Source: Eutreptiella sp. 'Long Island Sound 2002' (taxonomy: Eukaryota; Protista; Euglenida). From it: DNA of 64,000 nucleotides. Where the stretch lies: assembly GCA_964036045.1 (NCBI GenBank), contig OZ038379.1, positions 9,796,001 to 9,860,000 of the forward strand, in the 5' to 3' direction. The first letter of the stretch is position 1. Each line of letters starts with the position of its first letter. Of the stretch, positions 7,976-28,585 are shown piece after piece. The notes under the pieces are model-generated. The model was not told the DNA's origin. It did not search any database and was given only the letters and a program-made list of their open reading frames with translations. A program made the position numbers and the translations under genes.

Positions 7976-10315
7976 GCAGAGGAGCCCCAGACCGCCATTC
8001 CGCCCCTCCCCCACCCCCCAGTAACAGTGATGCCACCTGTCACATTCTTCTTCTGCACACTGTTGCGTTTGATGTTTTTTCCTTCCTGCACAACATCACC
8101 AAGGCACCCTGTCCTGTAGCATGTGTGGGTCTTGATCCTGGGTGCCCTGCCGCATGGTTGTTTGTTGTTGTTGTTCTGGTTAGTGGTTTTGCAGCTTACA
8201 AGTGAGGAGCCGTCACTCTATCCAGGAGGTTGGGCGCGCGCTTGGCCGATTGCCTGGCAGCTCTGGCTGGGACCCCAAAGAGGGGCCGACATTTGCGAAG
8301 GTAAGGGCAAGTGGGATATGGCAGGGAGCACATGACCAGCCAATTTTAAACAAACCACATGTCTGGTTTCAGATTTGCATTATGTGGCTTGACTGTCATT
8401 GTGTGTGCTGGCAATTACAAGGGGGAAATAATACGCCCGGCGTCTCGGATGTGAACACTGGAAAAAAAAAATAACCACTGTCAATTGCCCACCCGAGTGT
8501 TTCACGCTTACAGAATGTCAGGAACATCCTATCTGATTCAAGTGAGACAGAAATAATTGTGGCTCAGAGTTTCTCTCATTGTCACCGTGGTATGGAATGT
8601 GGTCAGATCTGTCAATGTCTGTCTTTCAGCAAAGCACAACGTCATGGGGTTGTCTTTTTCATACGGCATGGGTTTTGGAAAAAGCTTCGAGCCTCTTTCC
8701 GCGAGTCAAGAATGGCATCCATTTTTAACAACACCCTGAGGGTCGACATAATTTAGATTGCCAATGTGCAACAGCAAGCAGACATGCGGCTGCATTGCGG
8801 GGACAGAATAGGAGCAGTCAACTGCAGCTGCAGCCACACCATTTTGTTCCAGGTGTCATGAACGGGATGCTGTGACTGGGTGGTGGATGTCTGTGGCTTG
8901 GATGACCTGTGCGTTATCTCCCAAGACGACACATCTTATGCCCTAGCTGCAGACCCTGACATCCAGCAGAGAAATATCCTTTTGGAGCTGCAACATGTGA
9001 AAGTAATTCAGGATCCTCAAGTGCAGCAACTTTTCACCCAATGACAATGGGCTGCCACCCACTCTGGTTGCGAGCACAAAGGTTGTACACAGTGGCCCAA
9101 GTCGGGCAGGCCAGCCAAAACTAGAAGAGAGGAGGGGGAGGGTGGTCTGGGACCCCAAATTTGTGTACCAAGAATGGCCCGACCAGATTTTCACCATTGT
9201 GAATCTCTATGGTCACTTTGGTTGGGGCTTTGGGCTTTGGGCTATCCTTCCCACCCCGATGAGGGCCTTATGGGCCCCCGGGTTGCCTCTACAGGGAAGC
9301 CAGGCGCAGGCGCACCACACACACCCCGCAGCCAGGCAGCTGGAGGGCGGGGCACACGCCTCCTAGTGCGGACATGCTTGTGTTGTGCTGGGGTGTGGGT
9401 GTGTCCAATGGGGTGCTTGCTGTCGAGGCGTAGGCGGCGCACTGGCTGGCGCAGTGACCAGCTCGCAAGTGTGGCAAAACAGGAGACTTTGCAAAATCAC
9501 AACCAAGGTGCGATAAAATTCATAAGTTTCGCATGTCTTTCAGCTCCAGCTTCCCGTTGACTATCTGTTTGGTAAAAACTTAGAACTTTTGTTGAATAGA
9601 TTAGAAGAACAACTTGCTGCCACATTTCCCACCCCCTACACAAACCAGCTGCCAATAGTTAAGCAGCAAGTGAACTAGCTGGGGTGGAAATAAAATTGAA
9701 AAGAGAGAGGTGTATCTTATATACTTGTTAACTCATTACACTGCATCTGTGTCGCATCAACACATATAGATATTTGTGGCATACACAGCATTAAAACAAA
9801 GTGTTGGTAGTCAAAAAAAGTACACCCATGAACCCACAGACAACTAAAAGCAGTTCCATTCATCAAGTGGGTAAGACAAGTGACATTGCAAAAAGAGACT
9901 AGCATCTGATGACACTGTGGCCCCAAAGCGCAACCGCATGTACTTGTCACTCCTGCGTTGGCAGCAGCCCTGTACCGGAACAAAACACACTTTTTATATC
10001 AATCAGTACACTATATATATAAACACAAGTCATCGCATCTTTTAGTTCCGCTATATGGCTAGCTATACATGCGGGCATTGTCCCTCCCATTGTATGTAGA
10101 CTTGCCGCTCACTCTGCACGGAGAATGCCGCTTTTTTCTTGCTATTTACTATGCTTCATCCTACCGTGCCACTGCTGAGCCTCAAAGGATTGAAAATTCA
10201 GCACTCCGTCTCTCCACATATCCTGCGGTGGCAGTGCAGTGTGCTGTGCATTGTTGTAGTGTACATATACATCAAATCTGTATTTTTGGTAGAGCAGTTG
10301 TTCGTTGTGTGGTAG

Positions 10316-10474
10316 TGCCAAATACCGTTTCGCCTCAGTGGTGCAGATAAACTCCCGTCACGGACTTTGCGTGAGTGCTCGGGGGAAACCTATGAAAAAG
10401 TCGCGCTGGCCCCTGATTTGCTTGCTGTTGTCCGGAAGACATTATCGTCCCGGAGCCTCTCTGAGTTGCAATAT
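10316..10474 (+). pseudogene. N-terminal part of the tyrosine recombinase ORF, separated from the rest by the TIR transposon
   Basis: Open frame ...LLAVVRKTLSSRSLSELQY joins in frame to KIDSHIKKLGSPKRYQLAF (16606 onward) when 10475-16605 is removed. Confidence 0.75.
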
Positions 10475-10505
10475 GGTGAGCATAACCTGGCATACCAGGA
10501 ATACC
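10475..10505 (+). repeat. Left TIR GGTGAGCATAACCTGGCATACCAGGAATACC
   Basis: Reverse complement of 16573-16603 with one mismatch; weaker similarity continues inward (TGGCATGTAC near 10552 vs GTACATGTGCCA near 16537). Confidence 0.92.
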
Positions 10506-10679
10506 TGGGAATATACGGGTAAAAAAGGGGGTTTTGGGAGAAAGGGGTATGTGGCATGTACAGTTGGGTACGAATGTATAATGCACAATGCATGCATAGG
10601 TGGGTTGGGGAATACCTCTAGTTTGCCAATTGTGATGGTCAATGTTGTGTTTGAAACTACCCCATTTTGGGCTCTTGGG

Positions 10680-10773
10680 GTATACGGCCGTATACTCAAG
10701 GCTCCAATACCTCAGTATACGGCCGTATACTCTGGAGTATACGGCCGTATACTTGGAGTATACGGCCGTATAC
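10680..10773. repeat. Palindrome array 1: 4 x GTATACGGCCGTATAC
   Basis: Copies at 10680, 10715, 10737, 10758; spacers 19, 6, 5 nt. Confidence 0.97.
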
Positions 10774-11002
10774 TGGGGGTATTTGTTTGCACCATGTGGT
10801 TGTTTCAAGTTGAAAAATTCCATTGTTGTGCCTTTTGTGCCCATCTTGTTGCATGCTTTGCCTTTGCCCAACAATTGCACACCACTTGAAACCAATCTAG
10901 GCTCATACTTCACTCAAGATTGCAATGTATGTCTCCATATGTGTCCATTCCAATCCATATTATGTTGCTTCTTGCTCTCCCAGGCCCTCTTTTTCTGCCA
11001 CC

Positions 11003-12079
11003 ATGACTTATGCGGGCACTCATGCCTTGTTGAAGAAGTGGGCCGATGCCGTAGCTCTCCGCACAGTGCACAGAGGTGTTTACAGCCCCGACGGCACACG
11101 CACCGTGTCTTGGCCTTCTCTTGAGATTTGTGCTTGGTCCACCTTGGACATCCCTGTGGCCCTGGTGAAGCTAACGCACCCCGGCGTTGCCCAACCCCAC
11201 AGCCTCACTGACCCTTTGTTGTCGTTGTTTGACAACAACCCTAATATGCAAGCTATTGTGTTGCAGCTCCATGATTCGGATGCCCGCGCTGTCGTGGAGC
11301 ATGTTAAAAAAAGCTGTGGGGGGCCCAATAGGGGGATGAGTTTGTATTTGAGGGAATGGGAGATGCAGGATGGCTCTCCGGGGATTCATATCTCGGGGGA
11401 CGTGGCCGCTGGCTGGCGCAAATGGGAGTGCAAGGCCCAGCAAGTGCAGCGGGGGCATTGGGAGGACACCGCCCCCCTCTACTCCCTCCACTCCCAATCG
11501 CCATGGTCCTGGCATGCCGATTTGGAGGGCCACACCCTCCCCACCTGGTACAAGGGTACTGGGATGCACCCCTCCCTTTTCTTCCCCCTCACCACCACCC
11601 CCCTTTTTGGTGTTGAACACCATCGTGTCTCCATCCCCGTTGACGGCGTCGATCATCGTCATGTCGACGACCTCAAGGATTTCAAGCAATGGGGCCATGC
11701 TTTCCAATCTGGCTTCATTTCTGTCAGTTGGATGGACAAGCTTCAGGATGAGTATGGGGAACTTAGGGCAGATGCGGGGCTCAATATTTTTAATGAGGAT
11801 TGGCCCGCCGAGACTCGTGCAGGGGACAGTGACACCCGCCGCACAATGACTTTACCGGAGGGGGGTGCAATGTACAGTTTCGCAAGGGAGGTCCTCATAC
11901 CCCACTTGGAGACTCATTTGGGTTGGAAGTGTCCGGTCGTGAATGTTACCACCTTTATTGTGGTGAAGGCCGGTACAGTGGATGTGGAAAAAAAACAGTG
12001 TTGGCACCGTGACATTAACCTCAGCTATGTTGCCGGCCCGGACCAACACCATGTTATTTGCTTGTTTCCGATACCTTGT
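11003..12079 (+). CDS. Cargo gene exon 1: unknown N-terminal domain plus first half of a PhyH-like 2OG-Fe(II) dioxygenase domain
   Basis: GCCACCATG at 11003, preceded by a pyrimidine tract and CAG near 10983; IFN...DTRR and KQCWHRD (HxD at 12005-12013) motifs; the frame runs into the palindrome array at a phase-0 GT (12080). Confidence 0.7.
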
Positions 12080-12310
12080 GTATACGGCCGTATACCCACG
12101 GTATACGGCCGTATACCCCCAGTATACGGCCGTATACCGCGAGTATACGGCCGTATACCTGCCCACCCATTTTGAGTATACGGCCGTATACTCCGAGGTA
12201 TACGGCCGTATACTCGGAGGTATACGGCCGTATACTCATAGTATTTGTTGCCAATTTCAATTTATTTTGCCTAGTTCTTTGTTAGAATTACACCCTTTCT
12301 TCCCATTCAG
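12080..12310 (+). other. Predicted 231-nt GT-AG intron containing palindrome array 2 (7 x GTATACGGCCGTATAC, 12080-12235)
   Basis: Copies at 12080, 12101, 12122, 12143, 12176, 12198, 12220; 3' tract CCCTTTCTTCCCATTCAG; removal joins ICLFPIPC to VQYDPWPLRS in frame. Confidence 0.7.
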
Positions 12311-14056
12311 GTCCAGTATGATCCCTGGCCACTGCGGAGCATCACCGATTACGAGGTGGCCGAGCCCGAGGTGTCGGAGTTGGTGGCGCCAAAGGCTGCC
12401 GCGGGACAAGTGATCTCCGGTCGGGAGTACGTGGACCCCATTCCTGTGGGTCGGGGGGATGTTGCCAGTGCGCCCTCCGACCTGGCGTGCACCACTGGCA
12501 AGGACACGGGATACTATTCCCGTTTGAATGTCCGTGCCAGTGGTGCACTTTACGACATTCGCCTGCCCATTAGGGTTGTGGCGAATGTCGCAAAGGGGGG
12601 GGGGGTTGTGGAGGCCATTTGGGGGGCTGCGGTGTGGAGCAAGAGCTCCGGGAAGGTGCGGGTTTTTTTTAGCACCACGGGGGAAAAATGGAGCATTTCG
12701 GACTCCATTATGGTGCTCCAAAGTTTTGGGGGGGAGCCTGTCCCCGGGGAGCACTCCCTCGCCCTCCAGGCCGAGTTGGCCTCGAGGGCGGGGAAACAGC
12801 TTGGGGGGAGGGGGCTGAAGCGGGCTCATGATGAGCCCGCTGAGCCAAGGGCCACCCCTGCACCCACCCCCACCCGGAAGGCCCCCAAGCCTTCCGGGTC
12901 TGCTGCTGCTGCTGTTGCTGTTGTCTCGGGGGGGCTTGAGGGGTTTGGGGGGGTGGGGGGGATTGAAGCAGCTGCCCGCCGTGGCACATGCGAGGCCCTG
13001 GGGGACCTCGATGTGCCCAGCACCGCTGACATTGTCAGCGGTGTTGTGGCGGGCTTGGGGAAGTCCCGGCTGAACATCTCCCGAGAGATCGGGGAGTTCA
13101 GCCGGACTTCCCTGACCTCCTTGAAGGAGGCCAATGCCTCCCTCAAGGAGGAGCTGAAGGTTGCCCATGCTGAGGGTGACGCCAAGGACAAGAGGATTGC
13201 GGACCTGGAGACCAAGTTGGCCGATGCCACCACAAGTGCCCATGACTGGCACCTCAAGGCCAAGGAGTTGGAGACGCAACTCCAAGCGGCCAAGGCCAAC
13301 GAGGAGTGGGCGAGGTCCATTGTGGCCCATAGTGTCACACGGAGTGCACCCCCACCCCAAGGGTCTGGGAGTCAGGGCAGTGGGAGTCAGGGCAGTCGGG
13401 CCGCCTCCCCAGCACGTGGCCTCCCCCCAAAGCCGCAATGACTACCCCCATCCAACCCCGCCCTTGCAGCTTTATGCCGAGAGTTGGTGTACCGCAAGGT
13501 GCACATCTTGGGTGTACAAGTGCACACTGTGCAGTTTGGGGCTACAGGGACACGCAGGCAGGGGAAGGATTGGCGCCGTGCGCGCTTGTGCAGCGGCAAT
13601 GAAAGGCAAAGGGAGCTAATTTGCCTTTCAAACGCACATGCGCATGCGAATTTTCCAAGGTGGTTCCATTGGACCACCATTCAAGTGGTACAATGCGATA
13701 CTTCACAAAGAATGCTGGGCCATCGCCATATGAGGGATCCTTCTCCGCTTTCTGCCATATGTGTTGTCGGGGCGCATAGTGGTGGGGAGGTCTGTGTTGA
13801 AACAGGTGGAGTGCTCCATAGTCCCATGCAAGGGACCCCGATGCGGTTGGATGTACATGGAGGTGGTGTTGTGGATGCGAAGGCCTACAAGGGCTGGCCG
13901 GGTGTGGTTTTCAACTCCAAAGCCCACCACGGGCCTGCCCCATGGAGGGGGGAGCGCTATGCCATTGTTTTCTACAATGGGTGCAACACAGATTACCTCC
14001 CGGATGAGTCTGTTGATGAGTTATTGGCCTATGGCTTTCGTCCTTGGGGCCACTAG
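12311..14056 (+). pseudogene. Cargo gene exon 2: second half of dioxygenase 1, low-complexity linker, coiled coil, then a TET/JBP-like 2OG-Fe(II) dioxygenase; one in-frame TGA at 13439-13441
   Basis: ORFs 12356..13441 and 13484..14056 are in the same frame and the gap is open apart from the TGA. Motifs GDVASAPSDLAC...YSRLNV; heptad-rich LKEANASLKEELK...IADLETKL; TTIQV...GHRHMRD...SAICVVG.HSGGEV...VVFNSKAHHG...GERYAIVFY. Confidence 0.75.
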
Positions 14057-14062
14057 TGAGCA

Positions 14063-14149
14063 CCGTATACTACCAGTATACGGCCGTATACCTCCGAGTA
14101 TACGGCCGTATACCTGGAAGTATACGGCCGTATACTCGAAGTATACGGC
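14063..14149. repeat. Palindrome array 3: 3 full GTATACGGCCGTATAC plus 2 half copies
   Basis: Full copies at 14076, 14098, 14120; spacers 5-6 nt; begins 7 nt after the cargo stop codon. Confidence 0.97.
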
Positions 14150-14272
14150 GAAAGATTTGTGCTGAATCGTACATGCTGTGCGCCTGTTGCATGCGCCTGT
14201 GCGCACGGTTTCACTGGGCAACTGGCCCACATATGCCTGGCACATCTCTCCACAGCAATTATTGTAAGCAAT

Positions 14273-14371
14273 ATGTTTGCAAATGCCCATCAGAAGGAGA
14301 AGGGGCTTTGTTTGGAGAGCATTCAAGATTTTTGTGAAGGAATCAAACGCCGGCATTTGACCCCCTATGCA
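14273..14371 (+). CDS. Transposase exon 1 (predicted)
   Basis: ATG at 14273 after CTCTCCACAG (14255); phase-0 GTATGT donor at 14372; acceptor TTTTTTTTACAATAG ending at 14456 restores the frame of ORF 14490..16082. Confidence 0.6.
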
Positions 14372-14456
14372 GTATGTGCTCTGCATCCACAAACGTCAAC
14401 GCCAGTACCCTATTTTGTTTCACATGTTATGGCCTCCCCTGTTTTTTTTACAATAG

Positions 14457-16082
14457 GATTGCGGGGAAAGAGGGCAACGGCAAAGACGTTTGTGGATGCA
14501 ATCGGTAGTTTCAGCATTGCTTGGTGACGATGTACTTTTGCGACCCCATGCCCAAGGCCTCATGATTATTTTAAAAGATGGTGAGGTGGATGTGGCCGAC
14601 AAGGAGGCAATTAACCTACTCCGATGGATGCGGCGGCACCACCTTTCCATCCGGGCATTGAAGGGTTGCATGAGGACCACATGCACTTGGGACCATGTGA
14701 TGGCAATGCGTAAGACCCTCACACCTTACCTGTCCAAGGGGAGGGTTCTGGAGGTGGCCACTAAAGGGGGTACCCGGACATGTGGGGTGGTGGAATTGCA
14801 TGATATTGTCACCACCATGGTTGCATGTGCCCATGCCGAAGACAGCATTCGGAAGTATGCGGAGAATTCATATTTGGCTGTTGTAATCTGTTCTGATGCC
14901 ACTGTTTTTCATAATGCCAGTGCCACACGTTGTGACGTGTTTGTGGACCTATGGGAGGATAGGGGGGCACACCATGATGGTCAGGCATGGGCCTCATGGT
15001 GGGTTTTTGATGGGGGGGACGATATGGCCCATCTGCAAAGGATGGATGCCGTGGGGAAATTGAATGACCAAGTCAAAAAACTTGAAGCCGAGGGCGGCAT
15101 AGAAATTGGGGGTACTCCCAAAAAATTATTGTGTTTTAAAAGTGGGGATGGGAAAGTCATGATGTCGGGTTCGTGTGGGAAATGTTGGAATTGCAATCTC
15201 AAGTATGACCAATTTCAAGCCCATTTGTTTGCAATTGCAGATTTTCCAGTGCTTCCTCGCATTGGGTCCCTTATGTCTTGCATCCCTCCTGTCCGCAATG
15301 TTGGAGATGTGGCACATTGTTGTGCAAGGGTGGGGACAGGCATTGGGAAACGTCTCAAGGACAGCGCCCGCACATGGGGTTCACCAGGAGCTCTAAGGGC
15401 CGTGTCCCATTTCATTTCTAACCTCCGGCAAGAAGCAAAGCACATCCCTGTGGCTGAGAGAGTGATGCGTGCTCCCTCGAAAGAGAAGGAACACACTCTC
15501 GACATTAACGCCTCCCGTCTTTTTTTCGAAACACCTGAGTTGCACGCCGAGTTGGTGCGCATTGTTGCAATGTATTGTACCCATGTTGTGAAGTGGGAAG
15601 GCAACAGGTGGCTCAAAACTAGTGCCGTCCTGCACCTCATGTTGCAGGCCTGTTACTATATGCAAAAGATTTGGCGCCATGTGGGTCCTGTTCCCATGGA
15701 TCAACGCCAACGTTATGCATCCATGGTTACACAATTCACCAAGGCATGGGGGGCATTGGGGTGGAGTGTTCCGGTTTGGGTGCATTGGGTGGTGTGCCAC
15801 AGTGGGGCACACCTCCAAAGGTGGGGGAATTTTATTAAGTTTTCCTCCATTCCCACGGAATGGAGGAACAAAAGTTTTAAAATGGACATCCGCCATTGTT
15901 TTCAAGGGTGGAAGCTGAGCAAGCCTTATGTCACCCGATGGGGACTAAGGCATGCTCTGCACCTGGATGCCCTTGATTGGGGCATCCGGTTGTGGTTTGG
16001 GGAAAAGGGTTTGGGTAGAGAGGGGATCAAGTTTGGCATGCAACGCATGCGGAAGAAGCATCGTGCACCAAAGCACATGTAG
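14457..16082 (+). CDS. DDE transposase, RAG1/Transib/Chapaev-like fold (exon 2)
   Basis: Ordered motifs VICSD (D 14895), SGDGK (D 15147), CWNC, GDVAH, HWVVCH (Hx4H), SSIPTEWRNK (E 15858). The order parallels RAG1 SCDG / GYDEK / CxxC / DALH / HKTLAH / SEGNESGNK. Confidence 0.8.
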   Translation, partial: DCGERGQRQRRLWMQSVVSALLGDDVLLRPHAQGLMIILKDGEVDVADKEAINLLRWMRRHHLSIRALKGCMRTTCTWDHVMAMRKTLTPYLSKGRVLEVATKGGTRTCGVVELHDIVTTMVACAHAEDSIRKYAENSYLAVVICSDATVFHNASATRCDVFVDLWEDRGAHHDGQAWASWWVFDGGDDMAHLQRMDAVGKLNDQVKKLEAEGGIEIGGTPKKLLCFKSGDGKVMMSGSCGKCWNCNLKYDQFQAHLFAIADFPVLPRIGSLMSCIPPVRNVGDVAHCCARVGTGIGKRLKDSARTWGSPGALRAVSHFISNLRQEAKHIPVAERVMRAPSKEKEHTLDINASRLFFETPELHAELVRIVAMYCTHVVKWEGNRWLKTSAVLHLMLQACYYMQKIWRHVGPVPMDQRQRYASMVTQFTKAWGALGWSVPVWVHWVVCHSGAHLQRWGNFIKFSSIPTEWRNKSFKMDIRHCFQGWKLSKPYVTRWGLRHALHLDALDWGIRLWFGEKGLGREGIKFGMQRMRKKHRAPKHM

Positions 16083-16327
16083 GTATATATCATGTGATGT
16101 GCAATATGCGTAAGTGTGTATATTAGGTATATATAACCTGGGGAAGTGGATCACATTTGACATTTCGGATGGGACATCAAACAAGGTTGCTTCTTGTGGT
16201 CTTCTGCTTTGCTCATATGGTGCTCTTTTGTGTGTACAATGTGTTTGGGGGTTGCAGGGTCATGAGTAAATGCAAGGGGGAGGGGTAGGTGATGAGAATG
16301 GTGGCATGGGTGGAAGGTAGAAAGTCC

Positions 16328-16371
16328 CCGTATACTCCAAGTATACGGCCGTATACTCCGAAGTATACGGC
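16328..16371. repeat. Palindrome array 4: 1 full copy plus 2 half copies
   Basis: CCGTATAC-TCCAA-GTATACGGCCGTATAC-TCCGAA-GTATACGGC. Confidence 0.95.
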
Positions 16372-16572
16372 AAGAATACTTCTCCAATACTTCGAGTATA
16401 CTGACAAATACCTCAAAATGTGTAGATTGCCACACACAGGTGTGGGTGTATGGAATTGGCTTTCCGGTTTTTTGACCCCCCCCCCTATTTTCAGGGTGCT
16501 AAACTCATTTTTTTATATCCCATGGGCACACGGAACGACTAGGTACATGTGCCAAAATGGCTTTTTTGGGGG

Positions 16573-16603
16573 GGTATTCTTGGTATGCCAGGTTATGCTC
16601 ACC
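16573..16603 (-). repeat. Right TIR
   Basis: GGTATTCTTGGTATGCCAGGTTATGCTCACC, the reverse complement of the left TIR (1 mismatch). Confidence 0.92.
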
Positions 16604-16605
16604 AT

Positions 16606-17796
16606 AAAATTGATTCACATATAAAGAAATTGGGATCTCCTAAAAGATACCAGTTGGCTTTCGCCGTTTTGTTCGCCATGGCTTTGCGTGATGGGCTAAC
16701 AATTGATAGCCCTTCTGATTCATTTGCGGGCCTTCTTCTCGAGCTCGATTCCTATTCGTCTTCTACGGCGCGTAATGCTTATTCTGCTTTGTTGTTGATT
16801 CCTGGATTTCAAAGTATACGGTTTCATCCTTTACTTTCCCATGTGCGCAAGTCTTGGAACAAACACACACCGAAGTATGCTGCCTTTTGGGATCCTATCC
16901 CGGTGTTTTGGGCATTCATCAACACTTCGTACGATTTGTCTGTGATTAAGGAGGTGCGCATCAAACTCATTTTGTTGTGGCGCTTCCTCGGGCTGTTTCG
17001 GTCGTTTGATTTGTCACGGACTTTGCGCCAAGTCTCTTCGGTCGGCACCAGACGCTTTGTGGCCGTTAGACGTAACAACAAATCTTCCTATCGCTGGGAG
17101 GAGGTTTTGGTCTTAAAGGACAAGAGTTGGTGTCCTTGGGAGACACTTTTATTGTATGTTAGCCTCACGTCTTCACTCGTGGCGCCTGGGACGCCTTTGC
17201 TCATCACACTCCGTCGCCCATATACCCCGCTTGCGCCCAACACAGTAGGAAGTTTGACCGCTGCCGAGTTGAAGCGGTTTGGCATCGACACGTCCGTTTG
17301 GGGTGCGCACACCACGCGTGGCGCTTTCGTTGAATTTTTTCGCTGGTTGGGGTTGCCGAGTGAGGTTGTTGCCTCCATTGGGCAATGGGAGAATTGGAAT
17401 GCATTTGCAAAACATTATTTGCGCGTTGGCGCGTCCGGTGAAGCCAAGAAAGCACTTGACGACGTTGTACACACTACCTCACACGAGTCTTGTTGCTCTG
17501 GCGACGTGCCGCAAACTCACCAGGAGCCTGTCTTGCAGGTGATGAGGGGAGGAAGTGGCACGGAGCAAAGGCAACAAGACACGGGTGAGCCCACGCCACC
17601 CAGCCCAGTCGTGTCGTCCAGTGCCTCTAAGCGTCCAAGGGGGCGCGCTCCTGAACCTCCACGCAAGTTACCGCGCCTTGAGTCTGTTTCTTCTAGTGGT
17701 AGAGTAAGAAAAAGTCACTGCCTTGTCTTTCTTGGAGGGCTTGATCCAGGCCAAGCCCCCTTTAAAACCCTTTTGTTGATGCTAAGACTAACTTAA
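16606..17796 (+). pseudogene. Tyrosine recombinase of DIRS/Crypton type (main part; interrupted by the TIR transposon)
   Basis: Catalytic set present: R in FRSFDL (16999), CPWETLLLY, H-x-x-R in GAHTTRG (17308-17319), W in GQW, Y in AKHY (17416). The first 19 aa of track ORF 16549 come from the TIR. Confidence 0.88.
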
Positions 17797-25528: not shown

Positions 25529-28500
25529 GGGGGCGGCTCCGAAGAGGAGGACTTGGTTTTCTGGATCCTCGTGAAAATTGGGGATCAAGTTTTTCAAGCG
25601 GTGCTTGACACCGGTGCAACACTTTCCATAGTGGCCCGGCGCCTGCTAAGGACTTTCAAGAAAACTAAGACCGTGGCCATAAGAGTAGGGGATGGGCGTA
25701 CCATCCATTCCTTGGGGGGAGTCGATGTGACTATATGCTTGGGCGACGAAACTGTGACCCAGCACTGCAGAGTGCTGGACACCGACGCCTTTGACATCGT
25801 CATTGGTACCGACTTCCTACGAAGAAACCCCCAGGTAAAAATGCTGTCTCTCCAGCGCCCCTATTCTTTGCACTGCGACTTTGGCAGTGGGCTTTTCTCC
25901 GTACCTTTGGAGCTGTCAGGACGAAAAGAGTCTAGGCTGCGCTGCGCATCCAAGGCTAACTATCGTACTGAAAACTACCAATTGGCCCGTCACGTTCTTG
26001 AAAATGGACTGGCGGCCCTTCAGGTAAACCTGGATGAGATCCAGGTCGAATTGTTTGCGAGCCGGCAACAGCACATTATGCAGTTGTACTGCTCGAAACA
26101 TTTAAACAACGCTTTCCGTTTCTTCTGGAAAGCAATGGGCCTAGCGTATGCTAACCCTCCCTTCTCCCTGCTCGCGAAGGTTCTAACCAAAATCGCTTAT
26201 GAGGGAGGAAGGGTTGTCATGTGCACCCCTGATTGGGGCTGCTCTGGTGAACACGCTTACTGGCGCCGTATGCTAGATCGAATGACCGTGGGAAGAGTGC
26301 AAATCCCCGACGGTCCCATCTATGTGCCTGAGGACTCAGACACAGCTATGCAGGCCCCTGAGTGGGCTAGTTTCTTATCCATCGTTGATGGATCTCTCAA
26401 TCCTGTACCCCTGTGTGACCTAGACCAGGTGCTACTGAAAGAGGTCATGGCCGAAAATCGTGGCCTGACCCTTTGTGATCTCAAAAACCGATCTCCTGAG
26501 CACCTATCTGCCACACTTACAGGGTGTGAATCTCCCGATGGCTATCTGGAACCTGCAGCTATTAAGGAGGATGCTGACGACCAACTGTCTGAGATCGCCA
26601 GCACTATCCCTCCTGTTGATCCCAGCTGTGTTGACCTAAAACACAGTGCCTTCCTAGCCCAGCTGTTGCTGGAGGAGGTAGATCTAGAGTCGACCTCAGA
26701 ACCCGCTCCCCCTGTTGGGAAGCCAGTGCTACACATGCAGCCTATGCACACAGGTGAACCCGTGGCCCGGAGTCCTGATGCTCTGGCGCGGCCTGCTTCT
26801 AATAACATGCCACTGTCTGAGCATGACACTCAGGAACTCCGGCGGCTGTTGTACCTGAAGGCCGAAGGTATTGAGCGCCAAGAGCGGCTGCAATACCTCA
26901 GACAGACCTGGAAATCCTCCATCTGGTCTGAGGAGGACGATGATTCCTATACGCTGCCTGATCCTGAGATACCGCTAGTGTATTCTCTGCACTATGGGCA
27001 GCAATGTCCCCCTGAGTGGGACGATGGTTCTGTGCCTGCCGAAACTGCGGATCGGCAGAAAAAGAAAGAACATGGAAAGAGCAACCTCCATGCTGAGGAG
27101 GATTTCCTGCAGAAACTCGAGAGTCTTAACCTTGACCCCCGACTGAAGAAACTGCTGATAACCTATGAGGAGGTGTTCGGCGCCTTGCCGCCCCCCCTCT
27201 CTTGTAAAAATTTGGTCCAGATGGACCTGAAACTGAAACCTGAATTTGAAAAGACGCGAGTGAGGCGTCGTCCCTATCCCGCTCCACAGGAACAGGTTGA
27301 AGAAATCGAGCGCCAGATCCAGGACTGTATTGATGCTGGCCTCGTTGAAGAATATAAGAAGGGGGACTACCCCCATCACCGCAGTCCCTGTTTCCTGGTT
27401 GCTAAACCAGGGTCGACTGCCCTACGACTGGTTGTTGACTATGGTGAGGTCAACAAGAAAACCCAGAACCACTCAGGGAGTATTCCTAACATGGAAAATA
27501 CCCTGGAGCGTATTGCCAAATGCAGGTACAAGACCAAAATGGACAAACGCTCTGGTTTCTGGCAGGTGGACCTAACCGCCGCAGCTCAGGAGCTGCTCGC
27601 TTTTATAACCCCTAAGGGTCGTGTCTTTAAGTGGAAGGTCATGCCTTTCGGGGTGGCTAATGCCCCAGCGCTCTTCCAGGAGCTAATGAACAAAATTTTG
27701 TACATACTGAGGCGCAAGCCTCTAGTACAGGAGTTGATTTCTCGGGGTGCAGAAATGGAGGCCCACATCGACGACGTGAGTTTGGGTACTAATACTCAAG
27801 AGGACCATGTCCTTCTCCTCCGTGAATTTTTCATTGTTTGTCAAGAAAACCATCTCCGAATCAAACTCGAAAAATGTGAGTTTATGAAAGAGGAGATGGA
27901 ATATTTGGGTTTCGACGTGGGGTATGGCTGGTGGAAACCAGCCGCGTCTAAGATGCAGCCCCTACAGGACATGCAGATTCGCGATGACCCTAAGAAGGGT
28001 CTACACGATGTGAGGAGTTTTGTGGGCGCCTGTAATTTCTATCGGCGTCACATCCACAATTTTACCTACTCCTCTGCCCCCCTCACTGACCTAATCAAGA
28101 AAACTACTCCCTGGAGGTGGACCGCCAGAGAGGAGGAGTGTTTCCAGGAGTTGAAGAAGAAAATTGCCTCCTCCAACTGCCTGGGAGTGCCCCGCCCTAA
28201 GGGCGAGATAGTCCTGATCACTGATGCCAGTGATGTAGGGGGGGGTGGAACGATCTACCAATGGCAAGAGCTTAACCCCGCTGAACTAACCCACTGCCAT
28301 TATCGTACTAGTGGACTGAACCGTGATGGCTCGCTGAAACATGACTATCCTACCAGTGAGTGGCGGCTGGTGCCACTAGGACACTGGAATTGGAAATGGA
28401 ACCAAGCGCGTTCCAATTACAGCACCTATGACCAGGAACTCCTGGCCGGTATGTTGGTGCTTTCGTCACAATCCCGACTCCTGGGATCTAATCCTATTGT

Positions 28501-28585
28501 CTGGCTATGTGACCAGGAACCTGTGAAGTCTTTTCAGAAGGGTCCACCGCCAGAGAAAGCAAAATTAAAGCGGTGGTGGACTTAG
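25529..28585 (+). CDS. pol: Ty3/gypsy Pol: aspartic protease, Dam-like methyltransferase, RT, truncated RNase H; integrase missing
   Basis: VLDTGAT; VELFAS...YANPPFSLLAKVL; KMDKRSGFWQ, PFGVANAPALFQ, HIDDV; TDASDVG, YDQELLA. The sequence breaks at KRWWT where RNase H should continue. Confidence 0.9.
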   Translation, partial: GGGSEEEDLVFWILVKIGDQVFQAVLDTGATLSIVARRLLRTFKKTKTVAIRVGDGRTIHSLGGVDVTICLGDETVTQHCRVLDTDAFDIVIGTDFLRRNPQVKMLSLQRPYSLHCDFGSGLFSVPLELSGRKESRLRCASKANYRTENYQLARHVLENGLAALQVNLDEIQVELFASRQQHIMQLYCSKHLNNAFRFFWKAMGLAYANPPFSLLAKVLTKIAYEGGRVVMCTPDWGCSGEHAYWRRMLDRMTVGRVQIPDGPIYVPEDSDTAMQAPEWASFLSIVDGSLNPVPLCDLDQVLLKEVMAENRGLTLCDLKNRSPEHLSATLTGCESPDGYLEPAAIKEDADDQLSEIASTIPPVDPSCVDLKHSAFLAQLLLEEVDLESTSEPAPPVGKPVLHMQPMHTGEPVARSPDALARPASNNMPLSEHDTQELRRLLYLKAEGIERQERLQYLRQTWKSSIWSEEDDDSYTLPDPEIPLVYSLHYGQQCPPEWDDGSVPAETADRQKKKEHGKSNLHAEEDFLQKLESLNLDPRLKKLLITYEEVFGALPPPLSCKNLVQMDLKLKPEFEKTRVRRRPYPAPQEQVEEIERQIQDCIDAGLVEEYKKGDYPHHRSPCFLVAKPGSTALRLVVDYGEVNKKTQNHSGSIPNMENTLERIAKCRYKTKMDKRSGFWQVDLTAAAQELLAFITPKGRVFKWKVMPFGVANAPALFQELMNKILYILRRKPLVQELISRGAEMEAHIDDVSLGTNTQEDHVLLLREFFIVCQENHLRIKLEKCEFMKEEMEYLGFDVGYGWWKPAASKMQPLQDMQIRDDPKKGLHDVRSFVGACNFYRRHIHNFTYSSAPLTDLIKKTTPWRWTAREEECFQELKKKIASSNCLGVPRPKGEIVLITDASDVGGGGTIYQWQELNPAELTHCHYRTSGLNRDGSLKHDYPTSEWRLVPLGHWNWKWNQARSNYSTYDQELLAGMLVLSSQSRLLGSNPIVWLCDQEPVKSFQKGPPPEKAKLKRWWT

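Follow-up and report, generated by a model that had tools for sequence, protein, structure and literature searches.

A probably active DNA transposon family with a predicted RAG1/Transib-type transposase core, palindrome arrays and oxygenase-like cargo in a euglenid protist

The 64-kb stretch of the Eutreptiella sp. 'Long Island Sound 2002' genome analyzed here (contig OZ038379.1, positions 9,796,001 to 9,860,000; hereafter the window, with all window coordinates counted from its first letter) contains a transposon copy of 6,135 bp at positions 10472-16606. The best explanation for its features, which we consider probable when taken as a whole, is that it belongs to a currently active, high-copy family of cut-and-paste DNA transposons with an intact form of 7,467 bp, and that the window copy is an internally deleted, transposase-intact member of that family. 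Exact-sequence look-ups recovered 17 further loci in the same assembly, with 12 copies retaining both ends, and clusters built at 90% identity hold 107 transposase and 151 cargo open reading frame (ORF) members. Six copies are exactly 7,467 bp long and are found at six loci with different target-site duplications (TSDs); since they are only 0-4 bases apart, the family must have moved very recently. Compared with this 7,467-bp master, the window copy has an identity of 97.7-98.9% and is without master positions 1601-2915 (1.31 kb). Short microhomology (CCGAT / CCGTAT) is found at the deletion junction, the right breakpoint falls within the degenerate first unit of the second of four palindrome arrays described below, and loose contig ends from other runs run on into undeleted sequence at 12072. 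Internal deletion is the usual origin of non-autonomous DNA transposons.

The element is bounded by TAT...ATA, and the family duplicates 2 bp of any sequence at its target. Terminal inverted repeats (TIRs) had been proposed at a length of 31 bp in an earlier note on this DNA and are borne out here as arms of 34 nt that are 97% complementary; their 22-nt core has exactly two occurrences in the window where none is expected. TAT precedes GGTGAGC at the left end of 12/12 complete copies and ATA follows GCTCACC at the right end of 11/12, the remaining copy (locus L005) reading AGA, and the family termini across copies are TATGGTGAGC...GCTCACCATA. As TAT and ATA are constant across copies, they are part of the element and not of a duplication. 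The AT duplication described in the earlier note therefore belongs to these constant ends, and the real TSD is the outer 2 bp, which is AA for the window copy. The 2 bp flanking TAT...ATA are the same on the left and on the right in 11 of the 12 complete copies, with a sequence that varies by locus (AA, TA, CG, GA, AT, CC, TA, TT, TG, TA and CA) and an imperfect pair in the twelfth; a 3-bp match was found in 0/12 complete copies. A 2-bp TSD is further supported by two cases in which the family has inserted into its own older copies, where the target sequence is known. These self-insertions lie at L001:9130-10320 and L002:9093-9620, in targets equivalent to window positions 12870/12871 and 10618/10619. 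An alternative definition with TG..CA termini and a constant TA duplication was rejected, as it gives no account of the matching outer dinucleotides and conflicts with these two nested insertions.

The transposase is predicted to have the complete RAG1/Transib core architecture with the D-D-E, C(2)C and H(4)H motifs. Using the numbering of the 530-aa ORF at 14490-16082, D136, D220 (in GDGK), C232-x2-C235, H276, H432-x4-H437 and E457 are invariant in 15 aligned homologues of 32-95% identity, and these conserved acidic and zinc-ligand residues confirm the DDE transposase that had been proposed for this element. Predicted splicing of a short upstream exon to the core yields ...HLTPYA|DCG..., matching the L-x-P-Y-A-D conserved in homologues, and the resulting exon-intron boundary coincides with that of a relative of 43% identity (L006, which comes from another metagenome, ERZ27267800); the predicted two-exon protein has 574 aa. 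An AlphaFold model of the transposase (predicted local distance difference test [pLDDT] score 82, predicted template-modeling score 0.81) puts D136 in strand one of the RNase H-like sheet, with D220 immediately following strand four, and superposes on the whole RAG1/Transib core: the dimerization and DNA-binding domain, pre-RNase H, RNase H, ZnC2/ZnH2 and the C-terminal domain. A Foldseek search with this model returned RAG1 as the top match (E 1.7e-12, ~580 columns), followed by BbRAGL and HzTransib, with the P element far behind (3.5e-3), and structure searches of the Atlas and AlphaFold DB retrieved RAG1 plus many unnamed eukaryotic proteins of like shape. Motif order and spacing suggest that D136, D220 and E457 would be the counterparts of D600, D708 and E962 in RAG1, the 20 residues from H437 to E457 equaling what we take to be the distance from H942 to E962 in RAG1.

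At the level of sequence, the same protein was matched to no catalogued family. No Pfam match was found at E<=1 for the transposases of 25 family members, and neither phmmer nor a 15-sequence profile detected RAG1 or HzTransib among all PDB sequences at E<=10. In an exhaustive profile search, 908 representative proteins passed E<=1e-3 and 505 passed E<=1e-10, the majority being fragmentary sequences of environmental assemblies; no transposase relatives were found in viral and prokaryotic collections.

In our reading, the motifs and TSD of the family fit the CMCT clade, within which it would form a lineage of its own that is not yet described. The CMCT clade is defined by 1) a D-D-E triad with C(2)C and H(3-4)H located after its second D and before its E, amounting to 2 Cys and 3 His; 2) a TSD of 2-5 bp; and 3) termini that are mostly 5'-CA..TG-3' (Kojima 2025, PMC12730594). 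The invariant residues listed above provide the full motif set and the 2-bp TSD lies within the range of the clade, and the statement in the earlier note that this combination of features matches no family its author recognized was for that reason too strong. Four points weigh against this placement or the structural comparison beside it: the ends are 5'-TA..TA-3' and not CA..TG; the nearest solved structures to the predicted model are those of RAG1/Transib, which implies no placement inside Transib; the proposed equivalence of the catalytic residues with those of RAG1 is drawn from motif order and spacing; and we know of no solved structure for EnSpm, Mirage, Chapaev or Plavaka transposases.

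Comparison with individual members of the clade and with RAG1 gives a mixture of likeness and difference. Transib and RAG1 (HzTransib, BbRAGL and vertebrate RAG1) have the same core fold as that predicted here, yet no sequence-level similarity to the window family was detected with Pfam RAG1 models or PDB sequences; Transib has a 5-bp TSD and CAC heptamer-like termini in place of 2 bp and TATGG, and a further difference is that the window family has no RAG2-like partner and carries oxygenase-like cargo and palindrome arrays. TSDs of 3 bp and of TA, along with varied termini, occur within Transib itself (bioRxiv 10.64898/2026.08.26.747230), so differences in TSD and termini alone are not decisive, and it is the missing sequence-level link that keeps the family from being filed there. 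The ESTA elements of rust fungi are similar to the window family in being RAG1-like only by sensitive comparison, in their 2-bp TSD and in having an internal dioxygenase gene. ESTA is EnSpm-like, with a TA-specific TSD and CACCAC...GTGGTG termini (Kojima 2025, PMC12730594), whereas the window family duplicates any dinucleotide between TAT...ATA ends; the ESTA cargo is a bona fide fungal PU-type TET/JBP protein, whereas the window family combines a TET/JBP candidate with a second, PhyH-like oxygenase in a protist host. Mirage (CMC) has the 2-bp TSD and the CMCT motif set in common with the window family (PMC12730594; 10.64898/2026.08.26.747230). A DUF1280-containing cluster is among the structural and feature neighbors of the transposase, which bears on the comparison with Mirage, but no DUF1280 sequence match was found in the window family. 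En/Spm (CACTA) has the same clade-level zinc and DDE motifs, and differs in its CACTA termini and 3-bp TSD, as against 2 bp here, and in the Transposase_21 domain, for which the window family gave no match. En/Spm elements are multi-gene transposons with subterminal blocks of short repeats that are bound by an element-encoded protein; the repeat of the window family differs from these in being a perfect 16-bp palindrome that is also found in internal spacers. Pfam Transposase_21, Plavaka and KDZ domains gave no match in the 25 family members, and it is only among the weaker neighbors of the transposase, by features or structure, that Plavaka and Transposase_21 are found.

The palindrome in question, GTATACGGCCGTATAC, is present in 15 exact copies against 0.00 expected by shuffling, with four at 10680-10773, seven at 12080-12235, three at 14076-14135 and one at 16341. 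No exact copy was found elsewhere in the 64-kb window, so that four arrays of a single palindrome are, as first noticed, confined between the TIRs; the motif GTATAC is ~60x denser inside the element than in the remaining 58 kb. Spacing between palindromes is mostly 21-22 bp, a period of two helical turns, which would put all palindrome sites on one face of the helix. Both ends of the element are alike, with a TIR, a spacer of ~170-190 bp and an array at ~195-300 bp from the tip, and the array layout is the same in all copies. Related motifs accompany the transposase of L006, where an array of inverted GCCGCATATAC / GTATATGCGGC half-sites is found downstream (2637-2803) and CTGCATACCC inverted repeats are found upstream (240-300), and whose right end has GGGGGnGTATTCT...GCTCAC in common with the window element. 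The occurrence of similar half-sites beside so distant a transposase indicates that this type of motif travels with the transposase family. L006 also has a 52-nt tandem duplication inside its intron (529-635). It is not claimed as a complete cargo-less relative, as no left end was located in it. Relatives with surrounding context amounted to only two contigs in JGI metagenomes, both <2 kb, and to none in viral or prokaryotic collections.

From this layout, the palindromes would most likely be bound cooperatively by a dimeric protein that the element encodes, either the N-terminal region of the transposase or a cargo protein. A rather unlikely but serious alternative is that the arrays are regulatory or structural DNA (promoters, terminators, insulators or cruciforms) or targets of the cargo enzymes instead of transposase sites. 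Two of the four arrays are internal, lying between or within genes where transposase binding would be unneeded, arrays stand on both sides of every gene module, a deletion breakpoint falls within one of the array units, and every unit carries CGGCCG with its two CpG. Such roles would leave unaccounted for the mirror-image distances at which the outer arrays stand from the ends (209-302 and ~195-275 bp), which recall the subterminal repeats of En/Spm, as well as the related half-sites beside a distant transposase relative in another organism and the related ATACC/TATACGG motifs in the TIR itself.

The internal arrays also bear on how the element was assembled. Arrays 2 and 3 together make an inverted repeat (I1; 81 nt, 90%) around cargo ORFs 2-3, which, together with the self-insertions seen at L001 and L002, would suit a composite origin wherein a transposase-only element came to hold nested elements or array-bounded cassettes, the internal arrays being relics of former subterminal ones. 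We regard this as very unlikely, given that no internal TIR copies are found inside the element even when 3 mismatches are allowed, and that the 7,467-bp unit moves whole, each of the six near-identical copies having its own 2-bp TSD. Whatever its origin, the element is now one transposon.

Three cargo ORFs precede the transposase gene and are co-oriented with it. In each of the six near-identical masters ORF 1 is uninterrupted (724-732 codons), and the intact protein of 724-741 aa (P0110, 724; P0113, 741) extends ~350 codons beyond the point of truncation in the window. It contains WHRD, followed ~60 residues on by ...GDVWLGNALTVHRGG... (TVHRGG) and then by RPRVFGF, after which come a Cys-rich stretch and Lys-rich and acidic tails. 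We take the arrangement WHRD ... HxG ... R to be typical of PhyH-type Fe(II)/2-oxoglutarate (2OG) oxygenases, and by motif alone ORF 1 appears PhyH-like. Its Atlas features reach only a weak 0.80 to PhyH, no Pfam match was found (PhyH included), and an AlphaFold2 model of the full ORF 1 protein (P0110 with 13 in-genome paralogues) had a pLDDT of 26 and was unusable. The window copy has lost to the deletion all that comes after WHRD plus ~25 residues, the first domain's distal His and Arg among them, and the first cargo domain of this copy is therefore dead. What had been taken for an intron hidden in the dioxygenase domain, with a palindrome supplying its GT, is the scar of this deletion: intact copies have a continuous first domain, with the array located downstream.

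ORF 2 gave only coiled-coil matches in a Pfam search, all below threshold, and its stop codon at 13439-13441 is conserved in other copies. By language-model features alone, ORF 3 is similar to small Fe(II)/2OG dioxygenases, with an Atlas feature score of 0.96 to a cluster named 'Fe2OG dioxygenase domain' (209/256 shared features) and of 0.87 to Tet_JBP clusters; the fold neighbors of its top Atlas match include Tet_JBP, 2OG-FeII_Oxy_3 and ALKBH5-like. No Pfam Tet_JBP match was found, and ORF 3 is at most a TET/JBP candidate. Conserved residues of ORF 3 include H79, D84, H111, a distal HH and R-x5-Y. In the master copies the open frame of ORF 3, counted from the ORF 2 stop, lacks an ATG upstream of residue 77. 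At the end of ORF 1 in intact copies there is a possible donor (CAG|GTATTT), in phase with an acceptor-like tract before 12311. Two candidate introns, one of 563 nt holding array 2 and one of 54 nt spanning the conserved stop, are both in phase, and it is possible that intact copies encode a single three-exon cargo gene of ~1,260 aa. RNA-library contigs cross 12310, the first acceptor, unspliced.

The cargo is a fixed component of the family, as opposed to a one-off capture, since its order is identical in all 12 complete copies and in one transposase-less derivative; copies with the same TIRs and no cargo, which the earlier note had named as a possible finding, were not encountered among the complete copies (cargo in 12/12). 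Of the ~940-codon cargo gene with two 2OG-Fe(II) domains described there, the co-oriented ORFs stand and ORF 3 has language-model support, whereas the first domain is cut by the 1.31-kb deletion and neither domain is confirmed by profile or structure. Several observations count against the overall reading of the element: 1) no profile or structure support for either dioxygenase domain was found in Pfam, PHROGs, NCBIfam or PDB sequences; 2) the first pair of conserved ORF 3 residues is spaced H-x4-D and not H-x-D; 3) in the cargo the three codon positions have taken up substitutions between copies almost equally, and the transposase is mostly neutral by codon position; and 4) three estuary metatranscriptome runs gave thin, even, unspliced cover that includes intergenic DNA and has no splice joints, which could be DNA carry-over.

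These observations make room for the alternative that the cargo is passenger DNA, consisting of captured host gene fragments of the kind found in Pack-MULE and CACTA elements, with no role in transposition, and that the dioxygenase readings are over-interpreted. In its favor, along with the even distribution of substitutions and the unusable ORF 1 model, no cargo ORF has a Pfam, NCBIfam, PHROG or PDB sequence match (for ORF 3, Tet_JBP included), and a word-indexed search found homologues of the cargo ORFs only as copies in the same assembly. Derivatives with partial loss of cargo also exist, the window copy among them, and in L006, the one relative for which flanking DNA is available, the 414 bp preceding the transposase contain no cargo. 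We nevertheless consider this alternative unlikely, as the long ORFs are intact in six masters in the same order found in every complete copy, ORF 1 has kept the full WHRD...H...R motif set, and the Atlas similarity of ORF 3 is strong. The ORF 3 core, when compared with an old copy of 88% identity, furthermore has an excess of third-position substitutions (11/8/24 across the three positions, chi-square p ~0.006).

Transposons that carry an oxygenase gene have precedent in fungi, where TET/JBP genes are carried by KDZ, Plavaka, hAT7, IS3EU, PHISTA and Helitron elements (Kojima 2025, PMC12730594). Within the CMCT clade, TET/JBP dioxygenases are carried in fungi by ESTA, EnSpm and Plavaka (PMC12730594), and the concept of a transposon with a dioxygenase is therefore already known. 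The fungal elements have an Fe(II)/2OG-type oxygenase as constant cargo, as the window family putatively does, with a proposed role in escape from methylation-based silencing, and differ from it in their transposase lineages and host kingdom, and in that the window family has two unrelated oxygenase-like domains. Work by Iyer from 2014 is reportedly a further source on TET/JBP-carrying transposons of fungi. A literature search did not find a description of this lineage, its end and target rules, its palindrome arrays, its host group or its apparently double, non-fungal cargo.

A potential mechanism of transposition may be drawn from the biochemistry of RAG1/Transib, by which DDE-catalyzed nicking would occur at the TAT/ATA tips, double-strand cleavage would proceed via a transesterification intermediate, and integration would take place with a 2-bp stagger. 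The layout of the palindrome arrays suggests that they may be bound cooperatively by a dimeric element protein, in parallel to the subterminal repeats of En/Spm. By analogy with the fungal elements, the constant cargo, comprising a PhyH-like oxygenase, a coiled coil and a small Fe(II)/2OG-like domain, would most likely help the element evade host silencing. Chemical marking of the element's own or of host DNA, put forward in the earlier note, is for the cargo a hypothetical role. A bolder proposal is that the family is a new RAG1-fold lineage of superfamily rank, widespread in aquatic protists, that carries its own chromatin or DNA eraser, a multi-domain protein with two different Fe/2OG domains, and uses the CGGCCG arrays as an address to which either this enzyme or the transposase is recruited. 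We consider this decidedly improbable; if true, it would be a self-targeted anti-silencing device built into a transposon.

RAG1/Transib is the textbook case of a transposase that became an immune enzyme, and to our knowledge the deep relatives of the RAG1 fold are sparsely sampled. The family described here is large (908 representative clusters in environmental data) and invisible to sequence searches, is predicted to have a complete RAG1/Transib core, and has probably been caught in the course of transposing. Its TA..TA ends and unspecific 2-bp TSD offer a natural contrast for asking which parts of RAG1 set end recognition and cut spacing. The cargo may extend the idea of transposon-borne oxygenases from fungi to a protist, in a different and possibly double form, and the regular arrays of perfect palindromes provide a simple, testable module of protein-DNA recognition. 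These features should be relevant to specialists in transposons and in RAG evolution.

Table 1. Features of the transposon copy in the window (window coordinates)
Feature	Position	Strand	Description
Left TSD copy	10470..10471	.	AA, same as 16607-16608
Left TIR	10472..10505	+	starts TATGGTGAGCATAACC; two ATACC motifs within
Array 1	10680..10773	.	four exact palindromes; left subterminal, 209-302 bp from end
Cargo ORF 1, truncated	10925..12071	+	likely ATG 11003; N-terminal region and first half of a PhyH-like double-stranded beta-helix, to WHRD
Deletion junction	12071..12072	.	copy-specific 1.31-kb internal deletion, from comparison with master copies
Array 2	12080..12235	.	seven exact palindromes; in intact copies ~330 bp past ORF 1 end, inside candidate 563-nt intron
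Cargo ORF 2	12311..13441	+	beta-rich N-terminal part, low-complexity linker, coiled coil; possibly exon 2 of cargo gene
Cargo ORF 3	13484..14056	+	small Fe(II)/2OG-dioxygenase-like domain
Array 3	14076..14149	.	three exact palindromes and a half-site; between cargo and transposase gene
Transposase exon 1	14273..14371	+	33 codons; ATG, then GTATGT donor
Transposase intron	14372..14456	+	85 nt, GT..AG, phase 0; by homology only; unspliced in RNA-library contigs
Transposase exon 2	14457..16082	+	predicted RAG1/Transib-like core; D136, D220, E457, C232-x2-C235, H276, H432-x4-H437
Array 4	16328..16413	.	one exact palindrome, half-sites and AGTAT/ATAC motifs; right subterminal, ~195-275 bp from end
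Right TIR	16573..16606	-	ends ...GGTTATGCTCACCATA
Right TSD copy	16607..16608	.	AA, same as 10470-10471

Other derivatives of the family were found in the same assembly. The copies at L014 (7548-12717, 5,170 bp) and L017 (7548-13557, 6,010 bp) are further internal-deletion derivatives that are near-identical to the master elsewhere, the junction in L014 containing ~99 bp of filler, and L002-Y is another copy with an internal deletion. In P0019 the N-terminal part of ORF 1 is joined straight to the middle of the transposase, as expected of a deletion derivative, and in P0005 ~190 unrelated N-terminal residues are fused to the transposase.

The window copy is itself nested in another repeat (window 16549-17796, with its upstream part at 10069-10471), and no uninterrupted paralogue of this host repeat was present in the loci fetched. 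With the true ends and the 2-bp TSD, the upstream frame-0 and downstream frame-1 ORFs of the repeat are not rejoined, and an in-frame repair of an interrupted host ORF, as once suggested, is not upheld. The downstream ORF of the repeat includes a tyrosine-recombinase-like stretch (...WGAHTTRG...) that suggests a Crypton/DIRS-like element and has no Pfam match. Elsewhere, a piggyBac-type transposase (PF13843 DDE_Tnp_1_7) adjoins a fragmented family copy at L002:640-1617, and the flanks of several loci commonly contain chromodomain-bearing Ty3/gypsy fragments. A Ty3/gypsy-type Pol with protease, RVT_1 and RNase H is also encoded at window 25553-28585, and its residues 156-213 give a sub-threshold match to a Dam N6-adenine methyltransferase (Pfam E 0.031).

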